A stretch of 64,000 nucleotides of DNA from Octopus bimaculoides (taxonomy: Eukaryota): the NCBI RefSeq assembly GCF_001194135.2, contig NC_068994.1:17854558-17918557 (forward strand), in the 5' to 3' direction. The first letter of the stretch is position 1. The number at the start of each line of letters is the position of its first letter. The position numbers were made by a program, and so were the translations under genes. This document shows positions 26,601-62,447 of the stretch, one piece after another. Below the pieces are notes generated by a model. The model did no database searches. It saw only the letters and a program-made list of their open reading frames with translations, and was not told the DNA's origin.

Positions 26601-27190
26601 GTTTTCATCATGTTAAATAAACCCTTCAATGTTAGTATTGGCCATAAAGGGGCTTTTACCCATTATCTTAGCATGACATTTTGTGGTCTTATTTCTATTT
26701 TGTTTTAAATTTGTTGGAGGAAAGTTTGAGCATTGTATATTGTTTGGACTAAATGTTTTACATTATTTACTTTTGCCCCTCTACATTCTATTTTCAAATC
26801 TTTACTGGGAACAGCATTGCTTTCCAGCATGCAAAGATTAATAAATGAAATACATGTCATATATTAAGTCATTTATATAACTATTCACCTCTCCTACAAA
26901 TTCATGACCTTGTACTGTTATTCATTTACATTGTATATGTGTATTTTTTATGTTTATTATTATAGTTTTGTTTCATGATTGTGATTTTTCTCTTAATCAT
27001 AATTTATCAAACCACATTGTTTAAAATACTTAACAGAAGCAGATTCAAGATTTCTGTTACTTGACTCAATCTGATAATGAGAAAGAGTTAGATTTACATC
27101 TGCAGCTGAGAAAAATGAATCACAATAAGCTGGTTACCCGTTTAGGTGAACTTCAGGTATGTATGTAACTTCATACACATGGATATGCAC

Positions 27191-34704: not shown

Positions 34705-36617
34705 CTATAGATGCATTTATACTATTCTAAAAAGAGAAAATATATTTTTACATTTTTTATCTTGTAAATTTTGTTCATCTATAATCCTTAAATTAAAAAA
34801 ATTTTTTTCTTTATTTTTTGCAATGCAAACATTGAGAAAATATTTTAATAGTCTATTTCATTATGAAGATTCATAGATTAATACATATTCTTTGAAATCT
34901 AAAGAAGATAAAATATTAAAATTAACATGTTCTTGTATTGAAGAAAAAAAAGTTAAGCAAGTTGAAAAGATTTTCTCATTTAAAAGTATTTTTGTTGTTT
35001 CTTTTAGTAAATCAACAAAATTCATTTTCTCTCAAGTTCATAAAAAAAAAAACATCCTATTTGGTAGAAATTGTATTTATAAATAAGTTGTATTTTTCTG
35101 AGAGAAGGTAAGACTATTGAAAAGGTTGCATGACGTAACGAAAATTTTAGGAAAATAAAAATAAGGAATAAGTGGAAATTTTACTGGTGAGTGTGTTAAA
35201 TTATAAGCACAAAAAGAAAATGACTCTCCCCAGACACAACAGAATATTTTAATCACTTTTTCACTAAGTGACTTCATGAGAATCATTTTGGTCTCTGGTT
35301 AGAAAACAATTTATAAATGAAGTCCTTGGGAAGGTGAAAACTGATTTCATGGTTCAAATTTTCATTATCATCATCATCATCATCATCATTTTTAACATTT
35401 GTTCTCCATGCTGTCATAAGTTGGATGGTTTGACAGGAGCTAGCCAACTGAAGAGCTGCCTGGGCTCCATGTCTGTTTTGGCATGGTTTCTACAGCTGGG
35501 CTCCATGTCTGTTTTGGCATGGTTTCTACAGCTGGATGTCCTTCCTAACACCAACCACTTTACAGAGCATATTGGGTACTTTTACACAGTACTAGCACCA
35601 GTGCTTTTACATGACACCAGCATAGGTGCTTCCATGTTGTACTGGCACTGGTGTGTTTTACATGGCACCAGCATCCATGAACCTGCAAGATTAGGAGCAC
35701 TCAACTGAAGAAGGATGCAAAGAACATTGTAATTTTATGTGAACATCAAGGACAATTTCTCAGACCCATCGGACGTTGGTCTAAAATGTCATTTAACTGT
35801 TAGACTATTTTCTTATTCATGCAACAGTATAGCTTTCATCCATCTGTCACTGTAAGGTATCTAGTTCTAGCTGACCTGTCTTAAGATGGTAAAGAAAACC
35901 AATAATTGCTAGATAGATAATAAAATGGTTGATAAAAGATCTAAAAAAGAGCTTATGTATGTTTTACTAAAATATATATATAAAATGAAATTTTAAAAAC
36001 CACTAGTCCAGTGTTAGGTGTGGCTGAGAAGCTTGCTTTCCAATCATTTGGTCTTGGACAGGTCTTCCATTATAGTCCCAGGCCAACCAAAGCTGTGTGA
36101 GTGGATTTGATAGACAGAAACTGAAAGAAGCTTGTCATATATATATGTATATGTGCGCTTGTCTGGACATGACATGATGGTTGTAAATAAGCATTGTCAT
36201 ATAAGAGAGGTTGTTTGTTATCAGTCTTCTGAAAAGCATGTTTAACTTGGAGAAAATATTACCTGGCTTAGAAACTGGTGAAGATTGGTGTTAGGAAGGG
36301 TATCTGATCATAGAAAATCTGCCTCAAATTTAGTTTATACTCCTGCAAGTATGATGATAGTTATATCCTCACTCCAGTGAAAAACTGGCTTTATATCATC
36401 AAAATAAATCGTTACTGTACTTAGCATTGAGTTGACAGAAATGTTAAAGTGTCTTTATAGTATACAAGTACAAGAATGATTTTCCAAACATTGGTCTGGA
36501 ATCTCATAGTCTGCGATAATTTACAAGCAGAAACTTTAAATTCCCACAACTGCTAGACTAGTATTCTGGTACCTTATATAGTTCAGTATTTATAAACTTT
36601 TATCATATTAACAAATA

Positions 36618-37015
36618 TCATCGTTTAACGTCCGCCTTCCATGCTAGCATGGGTTGGACGATTTGACTGAGGACTGGTGAAACCGGATGGCAACACCAGG
36701 CTCCAATCTAATTTGGCAGAGTTTCTACAGCTGGATGCCCTTCCTAATGCCAACCACTCAGAGAGTGTAGTGGGTGCTTTTACGTGTCACCCGCACGAAA
36801 ACGGCCACGCTCAAAATGGTGTCTTTTGTGTGCCACCCGCACAAGAGCCAGTCCAGGGGCACCGGCAATGATCTCGCTCGAAAAACCTCATGTGTCACTC
36901 GCACAAGAGCCAGTCCATGGGCACTGGGAACGATCTCGCACGAAAGATATCATGTGTCGCCCGCACATGAGCCAGTCCAGGGGCACTGGCAACGATCCTG
37001 CTCGAAAGATTTCAT
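36618..37015 (-). mobile_element. 3' UTR of the same LINE family, with three units of about 62 bp
   Basis: Near-identical to 25685-25899; repeated CCGCACAAGAGCCAGTCCAGGGGCAC units. Confidence 0.8.
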
Positions 37016-39313: not shown

Positions 39314-39679
39314 GTGTTGTTGGCACTCCATCGCTTACAACGTCGAGGGTTCCAGTTGATCCGATCAACGGAACAGCCTGCTCGTTAAATTAACGTGCAA
39401 GTGGCTGAGCACTCCACAGACACGTGTACCCTTAACGTAGTTCTCAGGGATATTCAATGTGACAAGGCTGACACTTTGAATTACAGGTACAACAGAAACA
39501 GGAAGTAAGAGTGAGAGAAAGTTGTGGTGAAAGAGTACAGCAGGGTTCACCACCATCCCCTGCTGGAGCTTTAGGTATTTTCGCTCAATAAACACTCACA
39601 ACGCCCGGTCTGGGAATCGAAACCGTGATCCTATGACAGCGAGTCCGCTGCTCTAACCACTGGGCCATTGCGCCTCCAC
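39314..39679 (-). mobile_element. SINE family C, full length
   Basis: Same head and body as 55513-55895. Confidence 0.85.
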
Positions 39680-39859
39680 ATATATATAGTGTATAGATGT
39701 AATTAAATGTAGATATTTTATTTTAAATGAAAACATAGTTGAAAGTGCTGATGATTCATATTTGTAGAGTAAGTATATATTAAAACAAAGGCTGAAAAAT
39801 TTGGTATTATTTTTAATTCCTTGTTATATGTGTTTCATTGAAACACTTAAGAAAAACTG

Positions 39860-42699: not shown

Positions 42700-43560
42700 G
42701 TGTCAGGCTATATGCACTATTCTACAACACTCCACCAGCATCTAACAAAGAGGACTACTTCACCAACCTGGGCCACCGACCATCCCACTGGACGCCAGTT
42801 CCAAGCAGTCAATCATTTTGTGGGCAGCTGCCAGCTTGTTGTGGACCGGTTTAACTTTCGCAGGCATCCCTGACATCTCAACATCTCTCCAGCTGAACTT
42901 TTGGCCCTTCAATGCCTCTGATACCACAAAGACATTATCATAAAACTGGCCAACAAGGGTGGAGCTGTGGTGGTGTGGTGCACAGGCCTCTGCAAGGCTG
43001 ATTCTCTCTGCCAACTTCAAGACACCGCCTTCTCAACTCGTGGCTCACCACTTCATCCTTCGTGAATATTCCCTCACCACTATCCATACCGCCCTTGCCG
43101 GAGTACGTTCCATGGACCATGCCTCTGCTCTCTCTCCTCACACCCACCCTGCCGTTGCCTGTCTCCTATTCCCCCCCAACTATCACACCTCCACCCTGCT
43201 CCTCCAATGTACCATTCTCTGAGCCTTCAGGCAACTCCAGTCCGTTTTGCACATCTTCCCCAACCTATCCCTTCCCTCCTTCTAATGAACCCACAACCTA
43301 CGTGACCGCCTGATTCACAGTTTCTTCTTTAACCCTACCTCCCAACTTGGCTCATTCCCTTGCTCCTGCCTATGCTGCTGCACTTATCTACCTCATCAAC
43401 ACCACCTTCCTCACAGGCACCCATCATCGTCCCTATCATATCACTAATTCCTTTACCTGCACTTATAGCTATGTCATTTACTGCATCGCCTGCTCTTTCT
43501 GCCCTTCTCTGTACATCGGTCAAACGGGATACTGCTTGGCTGACCGGTTTGCAGACAGAT
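42700..43560 (+). mobile_element. Penelope-like retroelement relic, internally deleted (RT N-terminus joined to GIY-YIG)
   Basis: IIKLANKGGAVVVW near 42935-42980 and FTCTYSYVIYCIACSFCPSLYIGQTG..LADRFA at about 43450-43555. Confidence 0.85.
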
Positions 43561-44249
43561 ATGTGGTAAGGCAAAGGAATTGAAAATGCCCTGTAGGACT
43601 GGAGACGAAAGAAGGACAGACAGGAAGTCAGAATGAAGACAGAAGTAAAGTATTAGGGAGAGCAAGAGAGTGGGAGGGAGGCAAAAGTGATGCATAGAAA
43701 GAGACGTCGCACAAAAAATATTCCAAGAATATTTTACAAATGAATAAAAAAAAAATCACAAGTGTGTAGCGTTACATAAATATATTTTTGAAATTTAACA
43801 AAAACACAACAAACAGGAAAATTTTACAAAAACATAACAAATAGAAAATTCGTAACTTATTCCTCATCAGTCAACGTCTAAAAGATCATCCCAATTTCGG
43901 GCCATAAATGTTGATATTATTCACTTTTGGTGGCATCAATGGTGAAAAGCCACTGGGAGTAGCTAATAAATGTACAGTACAGTGACGGGGATATATGAAT
44001 ATATAAAATTCCAGGCAATTCATTAAAATAGTGTGAAGCTTATTCCATCTGCACATGTCTCTCGATCGACAAACATTATTGCTAACGATTAAAACGAAAC
44101 TTAGATTAAACTTGTAACATTCCGATACATTAAAGAAAATTTCCCAGCATTTTAACACGTGACTTAACAGTTGTCATTTATAAATATTATTTTTTGTAAT
44201 AAGAACGTGGGCAGTTATGTTAATGTGTAAGTTACTAATTACATTTCGG

Positions 44250-44416
44250 TAAAATTTACCACTCCAAAACCAATGACAATACTATAAAACAAAAATACAG
44301 TTTAACTCCAATAGTTCTGCTAACATTTTCGCGGTAACGTTGCACTTTGAAACAATTCGGTAATTTCCGTTGTCAAATTGTCATTTGACGGTCTTTCTTG
44401 GTGCGGGAATTTTTAC
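44250..44416 (+). promoter_or_regulatory. candidate promoter/5' UTR of copy 2 with E2F-like and CHR-like motifs
   Basis: CpG-richer than the flanks; TTTCGCGG at 44327-44334, TTTGAA at 44346-44351, GCGGGAA at 44403-44409. Confidence 0.35.
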
Positions 44417-44457
44417 ATGATGTCAAAGAAACCTTACTTCACCGATGGAATTCCCAG
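44417..44457 (+). CDS. copy 2 candidate first coding exon [13 protein letters not shown] (ends phase 2)
   Basis: ATG in a locally CpG-richer segment, strong AG|gtacgt donor, phase fits 49808. No homolog in the window to confirm it. Confidence 0.55.
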
Positions 44458-45233
44458 GTACGTTTTATTATATATTTATTAAAGCAATACCAATAAATGG
44501 ATGAATTTCTTCCTTTTATCAGTTTCAATTTTTACAAAAGGAATATGTAGTGGACATAAAATATTTCAATCTGTTTATTAATACAAAATTGTTTTGATAG
44601 ATTAAAAGGACTGATTAAACTCACTTAACTTGCTTCTGAACTCGTTTACAATACGTACGTAAGATATTAATAATTGAACAGATTTATAATGTTAAGAGTG
44701 CAGCTTCAGAAAATTATCTGTGAATATATTCTACAACGAAACGATAATTTGTCTCTGACCTTTTTTTTTGCTTTAATTCTTTGTTCCACGGCCTTAATTG
44801 GCATACATTTACAAGATTTTGCTTCCTCATGACGTTCAGAAAATGGATGTTTTTGATATATTTTTGAGAGGTATTTATATAATATGGATATTAAAAGAAT
44901 ATCCATTTCCCCAGAAGTTATGAGGAAACAAAGTAAAAAAAGTGGCACACTTGTGTAAGCATGTCCCTTGCTTTATGCTTATCTAAAAGCATTCACTGAC
45001 ATAAACCGAATTAATGTTGTCTCAAATATTTATCATTAAAAAAAAAAACCTGACTTGAATATCCAACATATAAACTTATTCGTCTATAAAGCTTTGAATT
45101 TGTTCAAGTTATTATATGGATGACAAGCTCGGCGATTTTCTACTGAAACTTAGTAAAGTAGCTTGTTTTAAAATTTTTTATTTAGAAAAATAATAAAACT
45201 TCGTTAATATTTTTCAATGAATTAGAAGTATTT

Positions 45234-45264
<31 letters not shown>

Positions 45265-48200
45265 GTATAAATAATTTCTACCTTAGAAGCATTCCAAAAT
45301 ATTTTTTTCACCTAAAACTTCAAAATTATTCATGTAATTAAAAGGAGCACTTGTTCGTTTCAAAGGCCTTACGAAAGTAATAGTATTTATCTTGTCTGAG
45401 GTTAGTGTTTTTCGGGTCAGAGTGATTTTCTTTGGGAAAAAAACAAAAATGGGCAAAAATTGAAACTATTTCCATTGGCCAAAAGTTGAATGCAATGGAG
45501 GGTATAATTTTATACAAAATTGTGTGTTGTGGTCAACATTGAAATACGCTTGGGTAATTAATAGCCATGCTTTACCTATGTCAATTAGGAATATAATCAA
45601 TATATTTTATAGGTCTATCTTCAATAATGACAGCTTTACACTAAAAGCGTTGTAAGGATCACTATTTTTTATTTAGTGCGTTTTCTACCGAAACACTTTA
45701 AAACTTCGTATACTTGTATATTTTGTCTTATAGAACAGAAAAATTTTTATATTCGAAGTTATTTCATGTTAAAAGTTGTCATATTTCGGTAATTTCAACC
45801 AATCATTGACGTCTATTGAGGTGAGAACAATTACTGCTGTGGATTGTCAACAAGACGTTGTGGCGGTGTAATGGGATCTTTTTCCTTGAATAAAATTAGT
45901 GCCGTTGTTTGTCAACAACAACTATCTGCGGTACTGTTATTTATGACATCGTTCATGCGTTTGTACTAGTTTTAGCTTTAGGGTGTTAGGGTTCGGGTTT
46001 TAAGGTTAGGGTTATGAGAATTTTTGCCAAATTTGGTGAAAATCTGTTCAATACACCGCCACAAATTTTTCACCAAATTTGGCAAAAATATTCATAACCC
46101 TAACTCTAACCCTAAAAACCCTAACTCTAACTCTAAAACCCGAACCCTAACTCTAAAACCTGAACCCTAACCCTAAAAGCCTAAAGCTAAAACCAGTAAA
46201 ACGCACGAACGATGTCATAAATAACAGTACCACCGATAGTTGTTGTTGACAAACAACGACACTAATTTTATTCAAGGGAAAAGATCCCATTACACCGCCA
46301 CAACGTCTTGTTGACAATCCACAGCAGTGATTGTTTTTACCTCAATAGACGTCAGTGATTGGTTGAAATTACCGAAATATGACAATTTTAACATGAAATA
46401 ACTTTAAAAATATAAACTTTTCTCAACAACACTAAGAGTAAAAGATGTTTTATATGACACATTCTACCAGTGTCCCAAGTTTGAAAGTGTTTTGTTAAGA
46501 AAACAAATGGTGTCCGCCAAATCAGAAAGATCCTGTTGTAATATTTAGCTTGGACGCNNNNNNNNNNNNNNNNNNNNNNNNNNNNNNNNNNNNNNNNNNN
46601 NNNNNNNNNNNNNNNNNNNNNNNNNNNNNNNNNNNNNNNNNNNNNNNNNNNNNNNNNNNNNNNNNNNNNNNNNNNNNNNNNNNNNNNNNNNNNNNNNNNN
46701 NNNNNNNNNNNNNNNNNNNNNNNNNNNNNNNNNNNNNNNNNNNNNNNNNNNNNNNNNNNNNNNNNNNNNNNNNNNNNNNNNNNNNNNNNNNNNNNNNNNN
46801 NNNNNNNNNNNNNNNNNNNNNNNNNNNNNNNNNNNNNNNNNNNNNNNNNNNNNNNNNNNNNNNNNNNNNNNNNNNNNNNNNNNNAAATTAGTGCAATAGG
46901 AGTAAAACAACATGTAGTAAACGAATATGAAAAAAATGCACGCTGGCGAACGGGGGGTGGGATGAGAGGACTTGGAACATTCCCGATGTGAATTTTCCGA
47001 GTCCTCTCCCCCGTTCGCCAGTATGCATTTTTTTTCATATTCGTTTACTACATGTTGTTTTACACCTATTGTACTTTTTTTTTTCATTTTTGTGACTGGG
47101 TGTTAACGTTGAGTTTTCGGATCGTGTGACTTTTCCGAATCCTTGATATGATCTGGTAACTTGTGGGAATTTCTTGGCTTGGTGAATTTCTACCGGAGAT
47201 TTTTAACCCACTGTGCAGAGATGTTTTTTGTTGATATAGAAAAATGTTTTTTATATACAAAATGTTCTTTGTTTTGTTTTGGTTTCTTTGTGGGTGATGC
47301 AGAGTTACTTGAGTTATGTATGTGTAAATTGTTCATAACCATAAAAAAAAAAAGCAATTTGTTTTTATTTGTTCATGTGGACATTGTGGACTTTTCAATT
47401 GAGAAAATGGGTAGGTGAAGAGTTTGTACTTACTTGGAAAACTTGAACAAATCTTGCGGGCAATCAAACTGTTCTTCCCGATTTGGTGTGCAGTACAAAC
47501 TCTTCATTTACCCGTTTTCTCAATTGAAATGTTCACAATATCCACATCAACAAATAAAAAACAAATTGTATTTTTCTTATGGTTATGAACAATTGCCACA
47601 TGTACATAACCCAAGTGAGTCTGTATCATCTGCATACAACACAAAACGAAAAGAACATTTTGTATAAAAAAAAGCCCATTTTTCTCTATCAATGAAAAAC
47701 ATTTTTTATGCACATTATTCTGCTAATTGAACTGACTGAACATTAACTTTTTGCATGAACATTTTCATTTTCATGTAAATTTACATTTTCGTGCATGCAC
47801 ATATGTTTTGCTTTGTTTTAAAAAAATGTTTTCCTCTCTACCTCATACCTGTATGCTGACACACACTTGCACCACTCATATTTTAATGTGTGCTATCACT
47901 TGCTCTCTGTGCAACTGCAATCAATAGAGTTGCACATCTCTTTCAATGCACCAGCATATTACATTTATGCTTCTGCCTAGGCATATACACATCACCTTAT
48001 ATTGCATATACCAACTCTGAACGTTGATTCTTTGCTTTATATTTTTCATTTTTCATTTCTTTCACTTCCTATGTTTTTGACATGTATTCATTTGTTTGTA
48101 AATGGCACTGTCTCTATTTTTCTGCATTACACACAATATTACATGCATCTGTATCGTTCGATCTCTGTGGCTTTCTCACTAGAAGGGCAGGTAGTGTAAA

Positions 48201-51200
48201 AGGTAAGACTTCCTTTTTCCAAGCTGAGATTTGAAACCGAATCTAAGGATTCTCACTCGTCTGATCCACCACTGGCCAAACAAGCATGAAAGAAATTTCT
48301 TTGTCTTGTCAAAAAGTGATGGATGGATTTCCCTTCAATCTACGACCTGAGCTGTGTCATTTAAGGTTCAAGTGGAGAGGAAGCAACCTACATATGTAGA
48401 AATTACTCCTGTCTATGCAGTGGAAACACCCCTCCTCACCTGCTCCAAAGAAGGCCAGGGTCATTTCATTTGCAGGGAAGGTGATAGCCTATGTTTTTTG
48501 GGATGCAAAAGGCATTGTGTTTATTGACTATCTTCAAAAGGGCCACACCATCAATGGAGAGTACTATACCAACTTGCTGAGGCAGTTGTGAAAAGCTATT
48601 AAGACCAAATGCACATGAAAACTGACAGAAGGGATCTTGTTTCATCAGGACAATGCTCCAGCACACAAGTCCTTGATTTCAATGGCTGTTATGTGTGACT
48701 GTAGCTTTGAACTGGTTGATCATCCTCCTTATTCTCCTGATTTGGTCCCATCTGATTATCATTTGTTCCTCAACATGAAAAAACACTTGGCTGGGGACCA
48801 GTATTGCAGTGATAATGATGTCATATCTGCTGTTGATGACGTTTTTGACCAACTCAATGAAAGCTTCTTCACCAATGGGATCCAAGCACTGCAACACTGA
48901 TAGAAGAAGTGTGTGAACCTCAAAGGTGACTATGTTGAAAAATTAGCCTCATTTGGTCACATTCCATGAGAGTATCTTGGTTAGCCTATGAACTTTTCAT
49001 CTGACCCTTGTAAGGCTGCAAATTCTTTTATTCATGAATACTGGAATTCTAAGACTATTAGAAAGACCATATTCTTCACTTATTTTCTTATTTGGCTATT
49101 TGCTTTGGCAGAAGGTACAGTTAGGCACCAATGGAAGAATAGATCCTGAAATGCAAGTGGGGATGGATAGGTCATACCTTAAGGATACTGATATCCTGCA
49201 TTACATGTCTGGCTCTGACCTGGAACCCACAAGGGAGGCAGGAGAGAGGATGCCCTAAAAATAGTTGGAAGTGGGATACTGAGACAGCTGAAAAAGCAGG
49301 GATCCATCTGGTCAGAAGTAGAGAAGACAATTCAGAGTCAAGAACAATGGAGAAAAGTCATTGATGGCCTATGCTTCACAGGGAGTGAAGATGCTTGAGA
49401 TCAAGATATTCTGTATTATTGGCAGAATCAACTGAAGTTGGACAAATGCTTTGGATATTTATTCTGGTTGTTTGCATTTTGAGTTCATTTCCTATTGGTC
49501 CGCTTTGCTTTTCATTCTTCTGGATTTATAAAATAAAATTCCAAGCAAGCATTGGGGGTTGGTTGCCCTCCTCATTCTTAAAATTAGCTGCTCTGTGAGC
49601 AAAACTTTTTTTCCTCCAAGACAACAACTTTCACTCTAATGTAGTGGAAGAGTATAGTTACTAAGACTGTTGCAGAATATGGTTAATAAGTATGTTGGTA
49701 CATGGCAAATGTGATTATTTCAACACACTAAGACAATGCTAACCTTTGAAAGTAAATCATATTCATTGGCTACATGTATTTATTTTCAACTGTCTTGTAT
49801 CTATCAGCAAAATACATTTGGTGCAAGCATTAGTGAATCCAAAGGAATATAAGGATAGACGCCTCAGCCATGGAGCTATTCTACATATAGGTATGTATTG
49901 TTTTATACAATGTACTGACAAAAGATATACTTACATATATGGATCTTAATTTTGTAAAAAAATAAATTAACTGATGTTCTTTGTGGATGTTGATGTCAAC
50001 CTGTTACTTGAAAGTCCCTAACATGATGAAACTACATTACAATTATGATCCAATAATATTCTTTATAATTCATCTGTAACTTTCTGTTTTGCATTTCAAA
50101 TTTTCTATTAAAATTTGTCTAATTAAATGCATTTGTCTTTCTGTCTATATTGTGTTTCACACTCTAACCTCTCATTACCTAGCCCAAGGACACTTCCCCC
50201 AATACCCCCACTTCAAAGGATCTTTGTCTTGCAAGTTACTTGGTGACCCTGCTGCCATGTAAAAAACATCTAGTCCACACTGTAAAGTGGTTGGCATTTG
50301 GAAAGACATCCAGTTATAAAAACCATACCAAAACAGACAGTTGAGCCTGGTGCAGTCTTCTGGCTTGCCAGTTCCTGTCAAACCATCCAACCCAGGCTAG
50401 CATGGAAAATGGATGTTAATTAATGATGGTGATGTGCAAGACCATATGTTCACATATTTCTGCTTGTATTTGTTTATTTTATTGTGTATATATCATCATC
50501 ACTATCATTCTATGTCTGCTTTTCAGCCATAGAGATCATGTTGAAACAGACATTGGAGCAAGACGTGACCCTCTGACCTGTTGGATCCTGTCAGCCTATC
50601 CAACCCATATCAGCATAGAAAGCAAATATAAAATGATGATGATAAGGGTATATGATTTGCTTCCATACAGGTTCTGTCTACCAATACTACTCACAAGGCC
50701 TTACCATGTGTATACACACACACACACACACATATAAAAGCAGCATAGACAGTGTCAATATCAGGAGGTAATATTTATCATCCCTTAAATGTGGAAGTTC
50801 TGTTAGAGCATCCATCATTGATAAGACCAAGGACGGTTGAAATCACATGATCTGGTGGTCTCAGTGCTGGAGATGGCAGAGACTTATCTCCCTGGTAATG
50901 ATATAAACAAGAGTGCATTTTGCACCAAAAGCCGGTATGAGAATTTCTATCATGGTATCTACCACAGTATAGTTTGTTCTAACAGAACATCTACCACAGT
51001 ATAGTTGTAATAGAACATCCATGTTTAAGTAGGGATAGTTATATGTAGCAAAACCTCAGAGGTCACTAAATGGTAATGGTTATGTTTGATAATATTTGCA
51101 GCATTTAGTAGAGAAGTCCTGTTGTTCTTGATTCAGAAGTTTATCAAGTATAAAGATCAATGTGTAGTGATATGTTGCATTGGATAAATGAATGAAGAAC

Positions 51201-54200
51201 AGTATTAATTGCTTGTTGAGATGGCCCCATTTACCTATATGTTTATTATGATGGTTGTTTACAATATAGAAAATACAACTGCTTTGAGTTGCTTGTGTAC
51301 ACATGTTGTTTGTTGTTGCAATAAACAAATAATCTTTAGTTCCATGGTCCATAGTGTAGATAGTAAATTCATGTATGTGTGGCTACTGGAGAGAGAAAGA
51401 GAGAGCTGGTCTAGGCAGGTTGAGAACACAAGCAGCGTGTTGTCCCACATATAAAGGTATTACTTCTCCATTGGTACTGGAAGAAGGAAGGAAGAGGTAA
51501 AGTAGATGTGCTCTCTGATCAGAACCAGCAACCAAAGAGAATGAAAGCAATTTGGCTTTGGTTATTTACATTGTTCTTCACCAAACTAGGTTCAAGCTAA
51601 AACAAAGGATTTCCCAAATCTAATCAGCTTTGACCTATGTTTGACTCAAAAAGGGCTAAGAAGTCAGTTCATTTTCACAAATTTCCTAGTGCAACAGGCT
51701 AGAACAATTGGCTGAGGACTTGTAAGAAAATTATGGATTTGATTTTAAATCCTGGTTTAGACATTTTGTGGCAGTTTTCTTCACATGCACACAAATTGTT
51801 TCTTTCTCTTTCTAATTAAAAAAAAAAAATTTTTTTGAAATGATTAAATCATCCTTTTCTGGTTTTTGAAAGATCACCTTGTATTCCTTTACCATTTGTT
51901 CCTTCAGAGTCCCAAAAATGCTTTGAGCCTTACTTTAAATTATTACTAGGTTTGAGATTGTGTGTTTTTTTTATCCAGTCTCCACTCTAGGGCATTGACA
52001 ATTTCTCTATTTCGCAGATAAATTCTTGTTGTTTCTTTGTCATTATTGTTGACTGCATAGCAACAGAATTTTTTACTGCATTTTAAACTCATTTTTTTCA
52101 TCATCATCATGATCGTTTAACGTCTGCTTGCCGTGCTGGCATGGGTTGGATGGTTTAACTGAGAGCTGGGAGGCTGTATTAGGCTCCAATCTGATTTGGC
52201 AAGGTTTCTATAACTGGATGCCCTTCCTAACACCAACCACTCAAAGTTGTAGTGAGTGTTTTTTATGTGCCACTGGCACAGGAGCCAGTCAGGTGGCACT
52301 GACATAGGCCATGCTCAAATGGTGCTTTTTACATGCCTCCAGCACGGGTGACAGTCAGGCAGCACTGGCATTGATCAAGCTCAGTGTTCCATGAAAACAT
52401 GTCTGACCATGGAGAAATATTATCTTGCTTTGGAACAGGTAAGAGGTTGATGACAGGAAGAGCATCAAACTAGAAAAATCTACCTCGCTCAATTCTGACT
52501 CGTGCAAGCATGAAAAAATGGATATTAAAATGATCACACACACACACACACACATGTAAATCACCTTTTCATTTTATCTTTTTCAAGGAACTTTGGACAA
52601 GGACCAATCCTTTGGTTCCACTTTGGATAATCGGCGTGAAACTATTGGTTCTTCAAAAATAGGTTCTTTTGTCTCAAGCAGCTCTAATTATAATAGAAGA
52701 CATACAATAGTGCCAACAAAAGCATATGAAATTCGCCATAAAATTGCAACTGGAGCACTTTTCTCTCAGAACAGGTAGGGTTTGGATTTTTTTAAAAGAT
52801 GCATTAAACTAATTGAGCTAAATAAAATTATTGAATTAAAGAAAAAAATGCTAAAGATTTCTTAATATTGGTGTTTGTTCAATCTAGTTTCTGTAACACT
52901 AAGTAGTTTACAAAAGAAAAACTTGACAGATAAAATGATAGTGAATGAGGTAATTTTGCAAGAAACCACAGCAGATATCTCCAGTGAAGGGAACTATATA
53001 GCAAGCAGAATCAAATGAGTTTGCCCAGATATATAATCTGAGGCTTGTAATAAAAAATGAACTCAATACTCATGAATCTTCCTAAGTTGTTGTGTTGTTT
53101 TGTTGTTTAGATTTGACCCTCCGATCTTTCTTTAGTTGCATTTAAAATCATCTTTAACCCTTTTATAACCGGTTTTTATTTCAGTTAATTTTGAAAATAA
53201 GTAATTTGTGAAAATAGTTTTATTATTATTAAGCTGGAGTCTGAAACAAAAATTACTAGGAAATTTTACTGGAAGGTTTTGAGGTCACTTTAAAAACAGA
53301 GTTTGTCTCATAGAACCAGGCACAGTTTCAAGCAGGTTGCTATCAAAAGGGCTAATGTGTCTTGCTCTTTTCAAGATGATAGTTTGTAATTTGTGTGAAA
53401 TTTGGCTGCTTTTTCTCACAGTCTCGATTATCATAGTGACTCTCAGCATGCTTGAGTTATTAAGAGATGTAGACATCTTTTTATATTAAATCAATAATAT
53501 AACTTACATATTTAACACACACAATCTTCTTTCATGTGAGCCTGGGACCCTTTAAAACCTTTCCTTTCACATGTTTAGTGGCAGACTGCTCTAAGGACTG
53601 GACAAAAGATATTCCATGTAAACATACTGTTGTCCACAACACAAACTTGTGTGTTTTCTTCCAAATTATTTCAGTTGTTTAATTCTGTAACATTTGAATA
53701 AATCTGTACAATACCACCATGGAAAACAGACATATGATTTGTTACATCAATTTATTTCAGTAATTCAGAAATTTACTCACTTATTTAAATAAGATGATGG
53801 TAGTGCCTGTGACAAAAAAAAAAAAATACCATTACACATTGTAAGGTAGTTAGTGTTAGGAAGGGCATCCAATCATAGAAAACAAAATATGCTGACACTG
53901 ACACTGGAGCATGGGGCAGCTCTGCTGCTTACCAGATCCTATCAATGCATTTGGTCCATTCCAACATGGAAAATAGACCTTAGATAATGACGATGGTGAA
54001 GATAGGATGATTTCCTTGTCGGATTTAGAACTTATAGTATTTTTTGCTTTTTATATTTTTGTGGAACACTAGAAATAAAGGACACTGTATGATGGTGACA
54101 CTTGCTTACAAGTATCACACAGTATCAAGGCAAGGGGACAGTAACCCATGCACAAGCATATATTCATACAATATGGTTTCTTTCAGGTTCCATCTACGAA

Positions 54201-57200
54201 ATCTAGGATTTAGTTGACTTAGGGCTATAACAGAAGATACTTGCCATGCAATGGGACTGAACCCCAAACCCTGTGGTTGGATATTAATGTTTATGTTACT
54301 TTTGTATTAATTACTCTTTTATTTGTTTCAGTTATTTGACTGTGGCCATGCTAGAACATTGCCTTGAAAGGTTTTTTTCAGTCAAATGAATTGGCCCTAG
54401 TACTTATTCTATTGGTCTCTTTTGCTGAACCGCTAAGTTACAGGTTTGTAAACACACAAACACCGGTTGTCAAGCAATGATAGGGGGACAAAGACACATA
54501 CACATACACACATATGATGGGTTTCTTTCAGTTTCCATCTATCAAATCCACTCCAAATGCTTTGGTTGGCGTGAGGCTATAGTAGAAGACACTTGCCCTA
54601 GGTACCATGTAGTGCGACTGAACCCGGAAGCATGTGGTTGGGAAGAAAGCTTGTTATCACACCACCACACCTGCACCTATTAATGTATTTTTCTAATTAA
54701 TGTATTTTTCTCTTATTTTCTAGTTATGAATCTAGTAAGGATAGAATTGCCACACCTTCACGTCGCCGAGACACTGATCTGTCTAATTGTGATAAACGGC
54801 AGGTACAGAAGAATTTTTTGTTTTCTTTTGCTTAATTTTAGTGTGAATTTATTTCCCTTAGTGAGTAACCTTTAGGATTGCACTCAGGTAATCTGGGTAC
54901 AATTCCTAATAAGGAAAATATTTAAATTTAGAATTTTCTTGTAAATTTTACATTAAGAAATTGAATATGGTGTTCTTCTGAAGAATTTCTGGAGTAACAT
55001 TATTCAACAGGGTGCGTAGCTCAGAGATCAGGGAGTCTCTCCAGGTTGAGCTGTTACTTCTCAGCATTGAGAGGTCACAACTCCAGTACTGTGATTAGAA
55101 TGGCACAAGAAAGAATCTCAAGACATTCTTGAAGCCAAAGATACCTAGGGGTAGACCAAGAATGAGATGGTTGGATAATAACCACCTTAATTGGTCATAC
55201 TTGGGAATCCAGCTGGAAAATCTGATGATGGTTGCTTCGGATAGAACCCTATGGAGGAGGTATCTGTGAACTCTATCCCCATGACTCTTCCAGGAATAGT
55301 GGATAGAGAAGATGGGTAGATGGAAATAGATATGGAATAGGGTACTTTAGATTTTAAGGAAGTTAAAGATATGTTAGAAAAAGTGTTGGTGATTTCAAAT
55401 GATAATAGGGGGCTAAATGTCATTGTTTTTCTTTCTTATGATCATAATGACTCTGATAAGTGGATCATGTGTTCTACCCTCCATCTCACTTTAGTGTTTC
55501 AGTTGTTGTTGTTGTTGTTGGCACTCTGTCGCTTACGACGTCGAGGGTTCCAGTTGATCCGATCAATGGAACAGCCTGCTCGTGAAATTAACGTGCAAGT
55601 GGCTGAGCACTCCACAGACACGTGTACCCTTAACGTAGTTCTCGGGGATATTCAGCGTGACACAGTGTGACAAGGCTGACCCTTTGAATTACTGGCACAA
55701 CAGAAACAGGAAGTAAGAGTGAGAGAAAGTTGTGGTGAAAGAGTACAGCAGGGTTCGCCACCATCCCCTGCCGGAGCCTTGTGGAGCTTTAGGTGTTTTC
55801 GCTCAATAAACACTCACAATGCCCAGTCTGAGAATCTAAACCGCGAGCCTATGACTGTGAGTCCACTGCCCTGACCACTGGGCCATTGCGCCTCCATTAG
55901 TGTTTCAGTACCAGTGCTGTAATAAGCTAGTCTTTGTTCATTTGTTCATGAATGTTTCTTTTTCCATGTCAGCATGGGCTGGAAGGGGAATTATTTGGGA
56001 CAGGATCTATAACTGGATGCTCTTTCTGTTACTAACTCTCACTTGTTTATCAAATAAAAGACTTTTTATTCTACAAGCCTTTCAAAGCATAGAGTGAAAC
56101 CTTGTGGTTGGTATGGCAATTTATTTTTAAGAGCATGTGATACTTTTATCATTGCTGTTGTAATTAATGTTAGGATGTTTTGCCTTAATTTTCAGTGCAA
56201 GAATTGTGATTCTTCTAAAGAAAACAGGAGACCCGTTGAAATTTTATACAACAGTTGTCATTTGAAGAATCCTACATCTGTTTGTGATTCTGATTTTCCA
56301 AATGATAAACCTATTTCTAAATTGGAAGCCTCTCATTGTTTGAGTGATTCTTCAGGCAAAATATCTTGTAACAGGAAGCAGAGAGAAAGGTTGACAACAA
56401 AACAGTGAGTGATTTTTTATTTTACCTTTTCATTGTTTTGAGGTTAGTATTTTAATTAAAATTAATGTTTACTATGTAACCAATGGATAATCTATAATTT
56501 TAAGTTTCTTTCTTTGTATCTCTCAATTTTATTAATTTATGAATGGAACTATCTATATTCTTTTATTAGTTCTATTTTCTATTATTAGTTCTATATTCTT
56601 TTATTAGTTTCATTTGAAGTTTGATATGTATTCAACTCAAATATTTGAAGGTGGTACTAGGGTACCATTGTCAAATATTTTAGTTGATTATAATAACCTT
56701 AATACTTTATTTCATTATGGTACATTATTGATTCTAGTTTCTTGAAGTACCTTTTTGATGTAAAGAGGTGTGACTCAACACCAGTATATACTCATATAAA
56801 CGTCCACACACATCCACATATGCCTATCAGAAATCCACTCACAAGATGCTGTGACAATCACAGAAGATACTTTTCTGTTGAGCTAGGAACCATATACTTA
56901 ACCACATGCTGGAAATTGGAATTGAAACCAGACTGCCAATTATTAGCATTATTGTCTCTGATATCAGAGTGATCTGCACCAAATTGGAAGAATGAGTTGG
57001 TAATAAGAGTACATATTAAGTAGGAAAAGTTAGTTGACTTGCAATATGGTATCCTGAGAAGCAAGCCCAAACTGGTCAATATTTGTTGTTGGACTGAGGG
57101 AACCTTTAACCCATTAGCATTTAAAGTGGCTGTATCTGACCCAAATATTCTACCTGTTTCACATTCAAACTGGCTGGATCTGGCTTCTTACACCTCCCCT

Positions 57201-60200
57201 AGAATGTCATTCTAAAAATAATCAATCACATCTTCAAGATATTAAAGCTATAGCATAATGCATGATAAATTCAAAACATAATTAAACAAGCATTATATTT
57301 GACAGAACAATTTGAATGCTAAAAGGTTAACATACCCCATCTGGTTTCATCCCAGTTCTTGGATAAGAACTGGGATGAATTGATGCATAGCATGGCTAAT
57401 CTCACTTAGAAATTACCTGACAGGAAGATATCCTTAAAAAGTTTAATAGAAATGGTTAATGTCAACTTTACTTTGGTGATATATTAGTATCACAGCTAGG
57501 AATTTTTGACTAGATTTTAACATCTGTTCTTGAATGTCTTGTGGAAAGACAAGTTTCTTTGGTTAGAAAGTCTGGAAATTAACTGAGAAAATGATCTCCC
57601 TGAGAGGTTTGGGAAGAGTTGATCGATGTTCAAATCACTTTGGTGATATACTACCACCTGATCTGAGAAAGTCTGATTTGATTTTAATATCTGTTCCTCT
57701 AAAAAGGTGGTGAGCTAGCAGAATTATTAGCATGCTGGACAAAATGCTTAGCAGCATTTCATCCATCTTCATGTTCTGAGTTCAAATTCTGCTGAGGTTG
57801 ATTTTGCCTTTCATCCTTTCAGAGTTGTTTAAATAAATACTAGTTGAACAGTGGGGTCAATGTAATTGACTTACCCACTTCCTCGAAATTGCTGGCCTTG
57901 TGTCAAATCTGAACGTTGTCTCAAAATGCTGAAGCTCATGCAGAGATTTCTTGAAGGAAATGTAGTGGTGGCTATTGTTTGTCAAGCATGTGTCCTCACA
58001 ACTCCTCTCTTTTTAACTGAGCTACAATTCTTTGTGAAGGGATAGGTTGTTGGCATCAACAGTGTTGCCATGCATTTATACTCTCTTTCAGTTGGGTAAT
58101 TCAGTCAGTGGAATGTCAACTTTTGTATTTTATAGGTGACTGAAATCTATGAGCAACAAGATCCTTGGGAATATTCTAAGAAGGATGGCTTACAACTATA
58201 TCACATTGAATGCACTAGTTCTCACCCAATCATCGAAGTTAAGCAACGTCAAACCTAGTTAATACTTAGTAATTGACTTACACCCTTCTCCTAAATTGCT
58301 AGTCTTTTGCCAAAATTTGAAATCTATATTCTGAGAAGGGTGTGTAGAATATTTTTTCCTGGATGATTTCCAGGTTTGGAATTATGGATAATTACAAGAG
58401 TTCTTGGTTTGGCAGTACTACCAAAAGTGATTATCAATTCAAACTAAGCCTCACAGACACATTGTTGTTGTCAGTAAGACTCTTCTAGTATACTGATATA
58501 CTGAAAGAATGTCAAAGCCATCAGTATCTGCAGTTAGTTGCTTTGTTATGTCAAAGGAAGACCATCATATACAATGGACCTGTCTGTTGTTCGAGTTCAC
58601 TGTGAAGATTATTCCATCACGTTTTTTTGGCAATGAAGGGATAGTTAGTATTGTTCTGCATTGTAGTTATGATGAAAGATCTAGTTATGTCAGACGAAAT
58701 TGAATGATATGTGAACAGGACTTTCTTGTGAAACAAAAATTAAGAATGCCACTACATAAAGTATGAGTTCCATTAATGCTGATAAAGGATATGAAAGAAA
58801 ATAGTATGACAACATTTTATAAACAAACTTTGAAAGTGTCAAGTTGTTTGGTATTTTACAGACAAGAAAGTAAATTTCAAATGCAGTATAGCTGTGGAAA
58901 CAGCAGAAAGATTGGCTATTTTTACCTTTATATGATGGAAAAAAAAGTCACCAGCAATTCAAAATTTACTTTCTTGTCTGTAAAATAGAAAATAGTATGT
59001 GTTTCTTAATTTTTTTTTTAACTCTGTGTCTTTATAACTGGGGTTTAAAAAGCTAGGTTTTTAGTGGTATTGATATATCTTTATTAAATCCTTTTTTCAA
59101 TTTATCTTTTTTTTAGGCAGACTTGTGAAAAATTAACACCAAAATCTGAAAAAAAAGGTATGTCTGAATTCTACTCTCTACTATAGCTTTTTATTTTCTT
59201 CATAAGAGATAGGCCAAGAGTTTCATTATTAATTAACTGCAAAGATTTTAATGCAAATATTATAAGACATTATAAAACAACAATTTGAGATTAAAAGAAG
59301 CAGCAGGCCCACCAATGGTACGCAAACCATGTAACTATCTGTCACTTGGCAAGTGATAGATATGTGGTACCAGTTTCATCTGTGGGTTTGTTAATTGTTT
59401 ATATTTCAAATTGGTGTTTGCATTTTTTTCTTTACTACTTTCAACCAGAGAGCTTTGACCATGCTGGGGCACCGCTGTTATTTTTGCTACACTCTCACTA
59501 CTTGAAACCTCCTCTGATATGTGGCATGTGGTGAATGAGGGAGTTTGGTGTTACTGCCTTCATCTGCATTTCCTCCTCCGAGGTAGGTTCATCCAGAACT
59601 CTTGACAGGAGAAGATCCAGTTTTATTTTGAAGACACCTACATCCATCCCTTGTAGGACTTTCAGGTTTTTAGGGAGGATACTGAAAAGCTGTGGACCCT
59701 TGAAACCCAAGCTGTTGCAGAATCTGATCCTGTATCCTGATGCCAATGTTGGGATCTTTGGCATGTTTAATAACAAATGGTTTCATGTTTTATTGAGTTT
59801 TAGAGTTAATCATTGTCTAGCATCCCACATCAAACATGTCCAATTATCAAAAAGTTAGATGCCCTGTTTTTGTCCTATTTACTTGCTTGAGTGTCTACTC
59901 TGATATTTAAGCAGGATATTAAGGCCTGGAAAAGCCCTTAATAAATGATTAAAAAAATAAATTCTTTCTTTTTTTTGGTTTTCATTATTTTATGTTTTTG
60001 TTGTTCACAATTTTGTTTTTTAGCTCATTATTAAATACTTGTAGAAAGACTTCCTTCTGGGCAGTTTTCTACTAGTTGCTAAATGATATTCATTTGATTT
60101 CGAATTTGTGTAATTTTGCTGATGTTTTGTTTAATTTTAATTTGTATCATCTAATAGTACTCACTTGCTCAGTAAATAAATCAAAGGTGTCTTCATCATC

Positions 60201-62447
60201 ATTTAACATCTGTTTTCCATGCTGGCATGTTAGGCAGTTTGACCATTGCTGGTAAGCCGGAGAGCTGCACCAGGTTCCAGTTGTCTGTTTTGGCTTGGTT
60301 TCTATGGCTGGATGCCCATCCTAATGCCTACCACTTTACGGAGTGTACTTGGTGTCTCTTATGTGTCACTGGCATGAGTGCCCTTTTATGTGTTACTGGC
60401 ATGGGTGCTTTTTACATGTCACAGCATAGGTGCCTTTTACTTGTTACCAACACAGGAGCCTTTTACATATTGGCACTGCTCATAACCAAAATTTCACTCT
60501 GCTTGATGTGTCTTCTCAAGCAAAGCAAATCCCTAGAAGTCTTGGTCATTTGTCATCGAAATATGTCCCACCAATGTTGTCTCCTCATAACTTTCTGAGA
60601 AATGAATATTTGTTGATGAAATATTCTACAAATATGTTTCAGATGGTGTAGATTATATCAGAATTCAATGTGAAAAAACAGAGGGGTATGACTGATGTTT
60701 TTCACTCATACATTTTAATGAATTAATTATAATTATGTTGAAAAAAAAAAAAAATTACCTTTGAGTCCCATATGATTCCTGCTATTTCTAGCATATTAAA
60801 CGACAGCATAGAAGATGAGATCTAATTTTTCTCACTGTATTAAGATGTGATGTAAAGGTATATGAAGGCATGAATCAATAAAATATCTCTGGACAATGTA
60901 AATTGAATAAAGTCTACCTGTTGGTATTGCAGAGTTAATAAAGTTTGTATAATAGTGTTGGAAACTCTTAAAACTGTCTGAATTTATGTCTGTGTTACCA
61001 GGTTCTAATATGCTTAAACCCTGTTGTCGTAGAAATATTTTCAAACCTGTTAACTGCAATGATGCATCATTTTCCTTGTTGGATGAAGATCAGGTAAATA
61101 AAGAAGTAATACGTTTTTGTATTTGTACTGTTATGCATATCTTTCTCTTTTCATTTTTAGTTTATTTTGATATCTTTGAAGAAGAAAAAGGGGCAAATAA
61201 AGTAGTTATGTTCGATCTGTTATAGCTATGTAGTTCTGTGAAGGCATGTGGCTAAGTGGTGAGGGCATTTGGCACATGATTGTATGGTCATGAGTTCAAT
61301 TTTTGGCAGTGTATTGTGTCCTTGAGTAAGAAACTTTATTTTTCATTGCTCCAGTCCTGTCAGCTTGCAAAAATGAACTGGCACTTCAATGGGCCAGTTA
61401 TATCGCATTCTATGTCATGCTGAATCTAAGAACTATACTAAGAGTACATGTGTCTGTGGAGTGCTCAGCCACTTGCACATTAATTTCATAGGTGGGCTGT
61501 CCTGTTGATTGGATCAGCTGAAATCCTTGTCATTGTAACCTATGAAGTGCCAGTTTTTATTTTTTAAAGTTATGTAGTCCTAATTATACTAATTAAGTCA
61601 GAGAAACATAAGTAGGTGAATTAACTGGTTGTCAATCCGATAACCAAAGATTTGACTGTCAATATCCTATAAATGGTGCCTCGTTATGTTAAATGACCAA
61701 TACACTTGTAGCAGGAATATCTACTGGAGCATTCCAGTGGGACTTGTCATGCCACTAATCAATCCATTCGATCTCCCTTCTTATATCAGCTGTTGAACTC
61801 TTTACCTGTGTAAATATCTCCTCTTTTGTTGAGAGTAATGGCACTACACATTTTGTTTACTATTAGAAAAATAAATGATTTTCATTTAAAATTTCAATGG
61901 AATGCATGTTCTTTTCAGTCAACATGATACCAATCATTACCTTGCTGATGGACACCTAAAAATATCTTATGCACTAAACATTGAAATAGTAAAAAATTAT
62001 CTTGGCATGGTAAAGAGGATCAACAATGTATAATTGATGTATGCTTTGTTTATCTATGATACTGAATTAAAATCCTCTCTTGAATATAATATTCATTTCA
62101 AATTTTGGCACAAAATGATTTTCTATAATTATTATTTAAGGAGAATATTTAAATTTTACATTTGATATAAAACTACTAAATTTCTTTTTTTTTTTATTCA
62201 AAATATACAATTTCATCTTCATAATGTCTTTTCTTTTTAAATTATAATGTATAATCTTAATTTAAACATGCTAATCATGCTTGAAATTACATGTACTTAT
62301 ATATTTTTTTTCATTCAATTGTATATCTAGCAAAAGACACGTTTCAAACAAAAAGATTTAGATATGTTATACAACAATTACATCCAAACCCTTTATCTTG
62401 ATAAAATGGTGCTGAAAGCAATTCAGAAGAGAGAAGCTGATGCGGCA
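44417..62447 (+). CDS. HAUS8: HAUS8-like paralog, copy 2 (3'-partial). Exons: 44417-44457, 49808-49890, 52588-52774, 54724-54802, 56196-56404, 59117-59157, 61002-61093, 62331-62447
   Basis: Eight exons with canonical AG/GT sites join into 849 nt = 283 uninterrupted codons ([20 protein letters not shown]...[29 protein letters not shown]). Five of them are collinear homologs of copy 1 exons A, B, E, H and I, with homologous intron flanks. Confidence 0.72.
45742..46415. repeat. large fold-back palindrome with telomere-like (TTAGGG-variant) blocks
   Basis: Arms 45742-46043 and 46064-46415 are reverse complements with a loop of about 20 nt; a single-arm relative lies at 7140-7375. Confidence 0.9.
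46890..47075. repeat. short hairpin / MITE-like inverted repeat
   Basis: GTGCAATAGG..GCTGGCGAACGGGG (46890-46958) versus CCCCGTTCGCCAG..CCTATTGTAC (47008-47075). Confidence 0.85.
47225..47705. repeat. diverged inverted repeat, arms about 210 bp
   Basis: The + and - ORFs give near-identical peptides ([17 protein letters not shown] versus [17 protein letters not shown]). Confidence 0.8.
48380..49012 (+). mobile_element. mariner transposase C-terminal fragment (pseudogenised)
   Basis: [24 protein letters not shown] and [16 protein letters not shown] motifs with stops and frameshifts. Confidence 0.88.
49030..49400 (+). mobile_element. degenerate LINE 3' fragment (RTE-like)
   Basis: [17 protein letters not shown] pattern with stops. 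Confidence 0.5.
49808..49890 (+). CDS. copy 2 exon 2 (2 to 1): [27 protein letters not shown]
   Basis: TCAG acceptor, TAG|gtatgt donor; phases bridge exons 1 and 3. Confidence 0.6.
52588..52774 (+). CDS. copy 2 exon 3 (1 to 2): [20 protein letters not shown]...GALFSQN
   Basis: Pyrimidine tract + AAG acceptor, CAG|gtaggg donor; matches ORF 52593-52778. Confidence 0.7.
54310..54678 (-). mobile_element. SINE family A, reverse orientation
   Basis: Reverse complement of the family A head and tail. Confidence 0.75.
54724..54802 (+). CDS. copy 2 exon 4 (homolog of A): [26 protein letters not shown]
   Basis: ttttctag acceptor, CAG|gtacag donor; the downstream intron also aligns with about 5865-5925. 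Confidence 0.8.
55010..55300 (+). mobile_element. RTE-type LINE 3' fragment
   Basis: [12 protein letters not shown]; aligns with 9670-9950. Confidence 0.6.
55513..55895 (-). mobile_element. SINE family C, full length, with (AAC)n tail
   Basis: Same head and body as 39314-39679. Confidence 0.85.
56196..56404 (+). CDS. copy 2 exon 5 (homolog of B): [17 protein letters not shown]...RERLTTK
   Basis: ttttcag acceptor; CA|gtgagt donor identical to that of exon B. Confidence 0.85.
58188..58269 (+). pseudogene. 3'-truncated 5S rRNA pseudogene or 5S-derived fragment
   Basis: GCTTACAACTATATCACATTGAATGCACTAGTTCTCACCCAATCATCGAAGTTAAGCAACGTC aligns with the recalled 5' two-thirds of invertebrate 5S rRNA, including GAAGTTAAGC. 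Differences are mostly transitions. Confidence 0.8.
58742..58803 (+). pseudogene. decayed pseudo-exon homologous to copy 1 exon D, with a nonsense codon
   Basis: Ungapped alignment to the 3' part of exon D (about 70% identity by eye). GAA has become TAA at 58757-58759, and the CAG acceptor at the homologous position reads GTG. Confidence 0.65.
59117..59157 (+). CDS. copy 2 exon 6 (homolog of E): [13 protein letters not shown]
   Basis: Poly-T + AG acceptor, AAG|gtatgt donor; flanks homologous to those of exon E. Confidence 0.75.
59285..59850 (-). mobile_element. CR1/L2-like LINE 3' fragment
   Basis: ORF 59498-59776(-) [38 protein letters not shown]. Confidence 0.7.
61002..61093 (+). CDS. copy 2 exon 7 (homolog of H): [30 protein letters not shown]
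   Basis: CCAG acceptor, CAG|gtaaat donor; matches ORF 60986-61225. Confidence 0.8.
62331..62447 (+). CDS. HAUS8: copy 2 exon 8 (homolog of I): [39 protein letters not shown]
   Basis: CTAG acceptor, GCA|gtaagt donor; 117 nt, the same length as exon I. Confidence 0.9.

Follow-up and report, generated by a model that had tools for sequence, protein, structure and literature searches.

Tandem HAUS8 paralogues in octopus: a second copy without the SRY-motif exon and with a different basic N-terminal tail

The C-terminal helical half of the augmin subunit HAUS8 pairs with HAUS6 in solved augmin structures and, together with HAUS2, HAUS6 and HAUS7, builds the tetramer T-II. Augmin grips the mother microtubule through the calponin-homology (CH) domain of HAUS6 and the disordered tail of HAUS8, and these two sites together set affinity and branch angle (PMC12578939, PMC10102177). 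The HAUS8 tail is electropositive and its microtubule binding is electrostatic (PMC12578939). Residues 1–50 of human HAUS8 bind microtubules, and a KKKDKR basic patch beside the SRY motif is required for binding and is importin-regulated (PMC10323247). The tuning of affinity, Ran/importin control and branch angle by the HAUS8 tail is under active study (PMC10323247, PMC12578939). The AUG8/QWRF paralogues of plants (EDE1, which is QWRF5, and QWRF1, 2, 4 and 8) have a common C-terminal half that joins augmin and disordered, microtubule-facing N-terminal halves that differ. To our knowledge, swapping of subunit 8 paralogues is known only in plants. There, the QWRF proteins have been put forward as microtubule-binding augmin subunits that can replace one another and confer different properties, the sequence VxSRYxSPTPT has been suggested as their common minimal microtubule association domain, and AUG8 is tied to AUG6 by the QWRF motif (PMC13550708). 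Here we describe a tandem pair of HAUS8 genes in a 64,000-nucleotide stretch of Octopus bimaculoides DNA (the window), which two exactly mapping RefSeq proteins place at approximately 17.84–17.91 Mb of chromosome CM046614.1. Both genes, copy 1 (LOC106880657) and copy 2 (LOC106880652), were already filed in public databases as 'uncharacterized protein'. What is new is an animal HAUS8 paralogue, copy 2, that lacks the SRY motif and has a different basic tail; a literature search found no report of animal HAUS8 paralogues of this kind. Copy 2 is probably a maintained, protein-coding gene that keeps the C-terminal helical half behind a rebuilt, presumably disordered N-terminus.

Sequence comparison establishes both copies as members of the HAUS8/AUG8 family, the identity proposed by an earlier reading of the window from its sequence alone (the sequence-only reading). 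Each of the two aligns with mollusc and annelid proteins that bear the name HAUS8 (E = 1e-28 to 1e-34). In BLASTP searches, copy 1 matched Mytilus HAUS8 at E = 2e-34 over residues 94–482, including the SRY motif and the TSTP...DASAI block, and copy 2 at E = 4e-28 over residues 232–443, the helical half only. A full HMMER scan with copy 1 returned 56 proteins at E <= 0.001 (34 at E <= 1e-10). All named matches were called HAUS8, HAUS augmin-like complex subunit 8 or QWRF motif-containing; they include HAUS8 of Mytilus coruscus, subunit 8 of Owenia, Batillaria, Tegillarca and Sinanodonta, and 'QWRF motif-containing protein 4-like' of Patiria. The octopus alignment also matched that of human and Xenopus HAUS8 (hhalign, P = 4.4e-5, probability 69%), and Smith-Waterman alignment gave z scores of 5.5 (Xenopus) and 3.9 (human). 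PDB searches with the octopus sequences (phmmer and profiles) never reached HAUS8, matches there to polyubiquitin and otulin were rejected as summed weak matches or chance, and no Pfam family matched the octopus proteins.

The two copies share different parts of the animal HAUS8/Hice1/Dgt4 protein (PDB 7SQK chain H and 8AT3 chain H). Both have the conserved start of the helical region (Xenopus counterpart ESQTLLLTYLTIKM) and the ALDTTRHQI block. The motif that opens this region, at the plant QWRF position and of the form L..Y[IL]Q.LYL in animals, lies in exons I and I' and is invariant in all four octopus proteins. Copy 1 additionally has VxSRY[LM]Q next to a basic patch, the SRY motif being encoded in exon F. 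Unlike animal HAUS8, copy 2 lacks both the SRY motif and the TSTP...DAS.I block and begins with a different 104-residue N-terminus. A DLDLS motif precedes SRY in octopus (exon A versus exon F), Mytilus, Lottia and Liolophura and follows it in human and Xenopus. Owenia has a weaker form of it, SLEVSD, and the order of N-terminal motifs varies between lineages.

Exon coordinates were obtained by placing public protein models exactly on the DNA. All four models translate exactly: P0005 and P0006 represent copy 1 of O. bimaculoides and O. vulgaris, and P0007 (RefSeq) and P0008 represent copy 2 of the same two species. The features of copy 1, mapped with P0005, are as follows.

5713–34627, plus strand: copy 1, 495 amino acids (aa) in 13 coding exons; P0005 maps exactly
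5713–5781, plus strand: copy 1 exon A
8165–8352, plus strand: copy 1 exon B
11054–11100, plus strand: copy 1 exon C
12261–12333, plus strand: copy 1 exon D
13449–13480, plus strand: copy 1 exon E, a basic patch just ahead of the SRY motif
16844–16911, plus strand: copy 1 exon F, 68 nt, encoding KYVASRYMQ with the conserved VxSRY motif
19656–19923, plus strand: copy 1 exon G, 268 nt, with the conserved TSTP...DAS.I block of other lophotrochozoan HAUS8
21166–21266, plus strand: copy 1 exon H
22947–23063, plus strand: copy 1 exon I
27037–27156, plus strand: copy 1 exon J
32435–32573, plus strand: copy 1 exon K
33631–33781, plus strand: copy 1 exon L
34513–34627, plus strand: copy 1 exon M

Copy 2 begins at 44417 and extends past the end of the window. 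Its exons were placed by exact mapping of P0007, and primes mark homologues of copy 1 exons.

43900–44416, plus strand: CpG-rich candidate promoter of copy 2
44417–44457, plus strand: copy 2 exon N1, with the ATG at 44417
49808–49890, plus strand: copy 2 exon N2
52588–52774, plus strand: copy 2 exon N3
54724–54802, plus strand: copy 2 exon A', an open frame entered from N3; AAG stands where copy 1 exon A has its ATG
56196–56404, plus strand: copy 2 exon B', which ends in phase 2 and splices straight to E'
58742–58808, plus strand: D', dead relic of exon D, with an in-frame TAA at 58757–58759, the acceptor lost and the donor GT changed to AG
59117–59157, plus strand: copy 2 exon E', 41 nt, homologous to basic exon E in copy 1
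59158–61001, plus strand: copy 2 intron E'–H', 1844 bp, no N
61002–61093, plus strand: copy 2 exon H'
62331–62447, plus strand: copy 2 exon I', start of the structured region, 88% nucleotide identity to copy 1 exon I
L006 31312–35923, beyond the window: copy 2 exons J'–M', intact, with lengths matching copy 1

Exons F and G are missing from copy 2. The sequence-only reading had claimed that copy 2 lost the exon with the SRY motif while staying in frame, and exact mapping bears out the underlying arithmetic. F and G measure 68 and 268 nt and together 336 nt, a multiple of three that runs from phase 1 to phase 1; E ends with one extra base, H needs one, and E' joins H' in frame (...SEKKG/SNML..., the slash marking the junction). 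The interval 59158–61001, to which that reading had pointed, is exactly the annotated and ungapped intron between the two homologues. When F and G were aligned locally with this intron and with the entire 54.7–64 kb region, scores stayed at shuffle level (z = 0.7 and -1.1); the same procedure found the dead exon D at z = 9.7. In O. bimaculoides and O. vulgaris alike, the complete copy 2 gene is free of F or G relics, and neither full-length copy 2 protein contains an SRY motif. The same E'–H' junction recurs in the gap-free O. vulgaris assembly, where the intron measures 2083 bp and is 94% identical. The absence of F and G is real and not an assembly artefact.

The introns on either side show how the exons were lost. 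Colinear intron homology stops at 14241/59991 (copy 1/copy 2) and restarts at 20811/60836. The 5' end of copy 1 intron E–F has its homologues in 59158–59419 and 59794–59991, and the 3' end of intron G–H in 60836–61001. Between these limits lie 6570 bp in copy 1, including an 814-N gap, versus 845 bp in copy 2, in keeping with the earlier estimate of about 6.6 kb against less than 1 kb. Of the two limits given in the sequence-only reading, the second (20812/60837) coincides with ours and the first (14130/59880) falls approximately 110 bp short. The break in homology within the flanking introns and the lack of any relic show that F and G were removed by genomic deletion. Two SRY-like candidates in copy 2 were rejected. 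An 'SRYLQ' reading at 52970–52987 (plus strand, intron N3–A') meets an immediate stop and has no splice sites, and roughly 0.7 such matches are expected by chance. The stretch TIVPTKAYE in the N-terminal extension, set against RVIPSRYMQ, aligned with human, Xenopus and octopus copy 1 at shuffle level (Smith-Waterman, p = 0.16–0.65).

Copy 2 has changed in further ways. The sequence-only account of exon loss held for F and G and overlooked both the loss of C and D and the 104-residue basic extension. Exon C has no convincing relic in copy 2; a candidate at 56672–56703 (z = 3.5 in O. bimaculoides) was not reproduced in O. vulgaris and is doubtful. The lesions of D' are shared, with the same TAA and lost donor in O. 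vulgaris and the same TAA in a third octopod (species L002). Exons C and D together measure 120 nt, and phase 2 is common to the end of B and the start of E, so B' and E' join in frame. Both the deletion of F and G and the decay of exon D predate the divergence of O. bimaculoides from O. vulgaris. The proposal that copy 2 arose by fixing an exon-skipped isoform is not supported: F and G were deleted from the DNA and D decayed in place.

Exons N1–N3 (44417–52774) encode the N-terminal extension of 104 aa, which has a net charge of +8, no counterpart found in copy 1 and no significant match to anything. Homology of N1 and N2 to the lophotrochozoan N-terminus (MASKR..YKPAP..RRNRKPLAQGRL) was not supported (hhalign, P = 0.24 to 0.44). 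Nor was a derivation of N3 from exon K (HKIATGALF versus HQIATEGIF), which scored E = 0.26–0.9 in BLASTP and was also the top hhalign pairing, at a level that was not significant; the N3 stretch resembling the exon K motif is invariant. Copy 1 keeps the SRY motif and lacks the conserved N-terminal module of other lophotrochozoan HAUS8. Comparison of the copy 2 5' exons with lophotrochozoan HAUS8 N-termini gave no significant match (hhalign, P = 0.24); these exons may be ancestral or new, and a 'complementary' loss between the copies is therefore only a possibility. The CpG-rich stretch directly upstream of the copy 2 ATG, with a CpG observed/expected ratio of 1.14 versus 0.30 window-wide, suggests a promoter of copy 2's own.

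We compared the copies between species to assess whether copy 2 is a maintained gene or an unprocessed or dying pseudogene, with a frame left open by chance or by over-optimistic prediction and with exon losses that reflect decay. Several observations weigh against maintenance. In the comparison of O. bimaculoides with O. vulgaris, copy 2 shows a dN/dS of 0.98 (dS 0.081; binomial p = 0.51 versus neutral), and its assembly domain, I'–M', has a dN/dS of 1.07; the copy 1 values are 0.61 overall and 0.43 for I–M. Four ancestral exons are lost, including the most conserved N-terminal motif. The gene has no protein name, no transcript evidence was found, and the one further copy 2 sequence found is a genomic-type contig. 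Exon B' is conserved no better than its flanking introns in comparison with species L002. Both P0007 and the separately produced P0008 carry the B'/E'/H'/I' junctions and the N-terminal extension, but O. bimaculoides proteins may have guided the O. vulgaris model, and the two annotations are possibly not fully independent.

A pseudogene is nevertheless unlikely, because the reading frame of 455–458 codons is intact in both species. The sequence-only reading had named stops or frameshifts in the downstream exons of copy 2, or an SRY-motif exon elsewhere in its product, as grounds for giving up its account; the downstream exons are intact and no SRY motif is found elsewhere in the protein. The copy 2 coding sequence (CDS) has 103 nucleotide differences between the two species and no stop, an outcome with P = 0.0006 under random substitution, as simulated with a simple substitution model that itself limits the weight of this figure. 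Introns accumulate 10.5 indels/kb, of which 29% are multiples of 3, so 10.3 frameshifts would be expected in the CDS; there are none, and the three indels present are each 3 nt long (P = 3.5e-5). The N-terminal half alone gives P = 0.019 for stops and P = 0.004 for frameshifts. This half is without a conversion donor and is still open, and gene conversion therefore cannot explain the open frame. Since the duplication, five exons in the window have stayed open despite 12–36% differing sites relative to copy 1 (P = 0.002 to 0.02), and every indel between B and B' preserves the frame. In the third octopod (L002/P0004), at 80–84% identity, B' likewise has an open frame and no indels other than 3n ones. 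Residues 74–110, a stretch of 37, are identical between O. bimaculoides and O. vulgaris, with two synonymous differences. All 11 introns are GT-AG in both P0007 and P0008, and the 12 retained exons are intact in both species; only the unused D' has a stop and lost splice sites. The CpG-rich 5' end likewise speaks against a pseudogene. By dS, the duplication has about six times the age of the species split (paralogue dS ~0.5 versus 0.08 between O. bimaculoides and O. vulgaris), and a pseudogene of that age would have broken long ago. Frame preservation outweighs the neutral dN/dS, and copy 2 is therefore probably a maintained protein-coding gene. We conclude that selection keeps the protein while tolerating, or driving, fast amino-acid change. 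Copy 2 is also of interest as a case in which dN/dS is near 1 yet the frame is clearly kept open by selection.

The degree of divergence between the copies varies along the gene. Paralogue identity is 55–65% for exons A, B, E and H, 70% for J, 78% for M, 85–90% for I and K, and 98% for L. Paralogue dN/dS is 0.38 for exon I, 0.30 for K and 0.46 for M, and because the introns around I and K are not conserved, the similarity of these two exons reflects constraint. Exon L differs in that paralogues within a species are more alike (98%) than orthologues (96%), with approximately 150 nt of intron on each side at 82–87%. Residues are shared within species: TESK and LVET in both O. bimaculoides copies versus TETK and LVDT in both O. 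vulgaris copies. This pattern points to homogenisation of exon L by gene conversion between the tandem copies. The exon L loci are as follows.

33631–33781 of the window: exon L
L006 33904–34054: exon L
L005 31585–31735: exon L
L007 26833–26983: exon L

Together these data suggest a course of events. After an old duplication, copy 2 lost F and G by genomic deletion, exon C was also lost, and exon D decayed in place; the gene carries three 5' coding exons absent from copy 1. The losses of 120 and 336 nt are both multiples of three, and the frame was therefore kept. Because copy 2 keeps the whole helical half, its product would take the HAUS8 place in augmin and may compete with copy 1 for it. 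An augmin with copy 2 would attach through the HAUS6 CH domain and through a more basic tail without VxSRY. Copy 2 carries a net charge of +16 in the residues that precede the coiled coil (exon I), against +5 to +7 for copy 1; it has kept the basic exon E homologue (E'), and the extension contributes +8 on its own. The earlier link between the motif region and microtubule association agrees with the literature (PMC13550708, PMC10323247). Since copy 2 is the more basic and HAUS8 binding is electrostatic and involves a disordered tail, however, loss of the motif does not entail weak binding. Altered microtubule binding by copy 2 is plausible, and the outcome may be a change in affinity, regulation or branch geometry, as with the plant AUG8/QWRF paralogues. 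The sequences show the gene structure, homology, exon losses, frame preservation, conservation in other species and gene conversion; expression of copy 2, its assembly into augmin and its effect on microtubules are inferred, and a dominant-negative action, which the sequence-only reading had raised, is speculation.

A functional role outside augmin, with the coiled coil redeployed behind a new N-terminus, for example in a fast-evolving germline role that would account for the dN/dS near 1, seems improbable. Fast amino-acid change does reach the assembly domain, and the N-terminal 104 residues are new and without a significant match, but the best-kept exons are I, which holds the motif at the QWRF position, K and L, and near-identity of exon L to copy 1 via gene conversion favours the same partners. 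That the missing F and G reflect an assembly collapse, or lie elsewhere in the gene or beyond the window, is very improbable: the sequence is a short-read scaffold with six N gaps, one of them the 814-N gap in copy 1 intron E–F, but the copy 2 interval has no N, the gap-free O. vulgaris assembly has the same structure, and neither species has a relic or an SRY motif in the copy 2 gene or protein.

As a probable augmin subunit, copy 2 is best compared with the plant AUG8/QWRF family. The octopus pair resembles it in layout, with I–M conserved, one exon homogenised, and N-termini that have diverged and use different exons. The examined Arabidopsis paralogues, in contrast, keep a VxSRY-type motif (PMC13550708), which octopus copy 2 has lost. 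The plant N-terminus is one large exon, whereas the octopus difference stems from small exons lost and gained. The plant paralogues have been shown to differ in expression and function, and it is in gene architecture that the octopus pair is compared with them. In its in-frame loss of whole exons (C and D, 120 nt; F and G, 336 nt), the octopus pair also resembles other tandem paralogues with losses of this type.

Further features of the two genes were observed. The intron 3' of copy 1 exon F is GC-AG, with the donor AAG/GCATGT (GC at 16912–16913), and the GC donor is conserved in O. sinensis and O. vulgaris. The 814 Ns in copy 1 intron E–F are a nominal gap length. No equivalent of the upstream 'MI' exon in O. 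sinensis copy 1 was found in the window. Exon G of O. sinensis copy 1 (L001 ~26066, corresponding to window ~19761) has one T fewer than in O. vulgaris and O. bimaculoides, which shifts the frame, and the RefSeq model XP_036364881 ends at 284 aa; the original frame is open downstream through G, H, I and J, so the missing T is either a very recent lesion or a fault in the assembly. Exon J (L007 19421–19540) is absent from P0006, the model of O. vulgaris copy 1, although the genomic exon is intact with good splice sites. Skipping it removes 120 nt and keeps the frame, and the omission is either an annotation gap or a real isoform. Exon H has two donors 12 nt apart that are conserved in both copies (21255–21266; 61094–61111; GTAAATAAAGAA/GTAATA); the copy 1 models use the distal donor, which adds VNKE, and the copy 2 models use the proximal one.

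The gene order copy 1 (plus strand), copy 2 (plus strand), ankyrin-repeat gene (minus strand) is common to O. bimaculoides and O. vulgaris, and in O. sinensis a fumarate hydratase gene (minus strand) lies upstream of copy 1. Self-comparison of the window, which has approximately 35% GC and six N gaps, shows a divergent colinear duplication with 60–75% identity between ~5.6–23.1 kb and 54.7–62.5 kb. No Rfam family matched in the window. A short dispersed repeat has copies at 19279–19425, 25672–25818 and 36617–36754 that are 98–99% identical and hence recently active; its older copies include 60190–60400, inside the E'–H' intron. A second repeat family, 85–92% identical, occurs at 7377–7694, 39315–39715 and 55513–55896. 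Retroelement reverse-transcriptase-like fragments (...GRPRxRWLD..., recognised by eye) lie at 9557–9949 and 54945–55325, and also at 13720–14106, for which Pfam gave no match. The first two are at colinear positions in intron A–B of the two copies, and that insertion therefore predates the duplication. The 500 bp at 43000–43499, approximately 1 kb upstream of the copy 2 start, have a GC fraction of 0.51 and a GC skew of -0.58 and are very C-rich on the plus strand.

Naming both genes as HAUS8 paralogues is useful in itself. More tentatively, octopus may possess two augmins that differ by HAUS8 swapping, one of them with a subunit that lacks the VxSRY motif, otherwise conserved between plants and humans, and has a new basic tail instead. 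EDE1/QWRF would then have its first counterpart in an animal, possibly with a split between mitotic and non-mitotic (neuronal or germline) branching. The two octopus copies offer a ready-made comparison pair within one species for a direct test of the role of the SRY motif.

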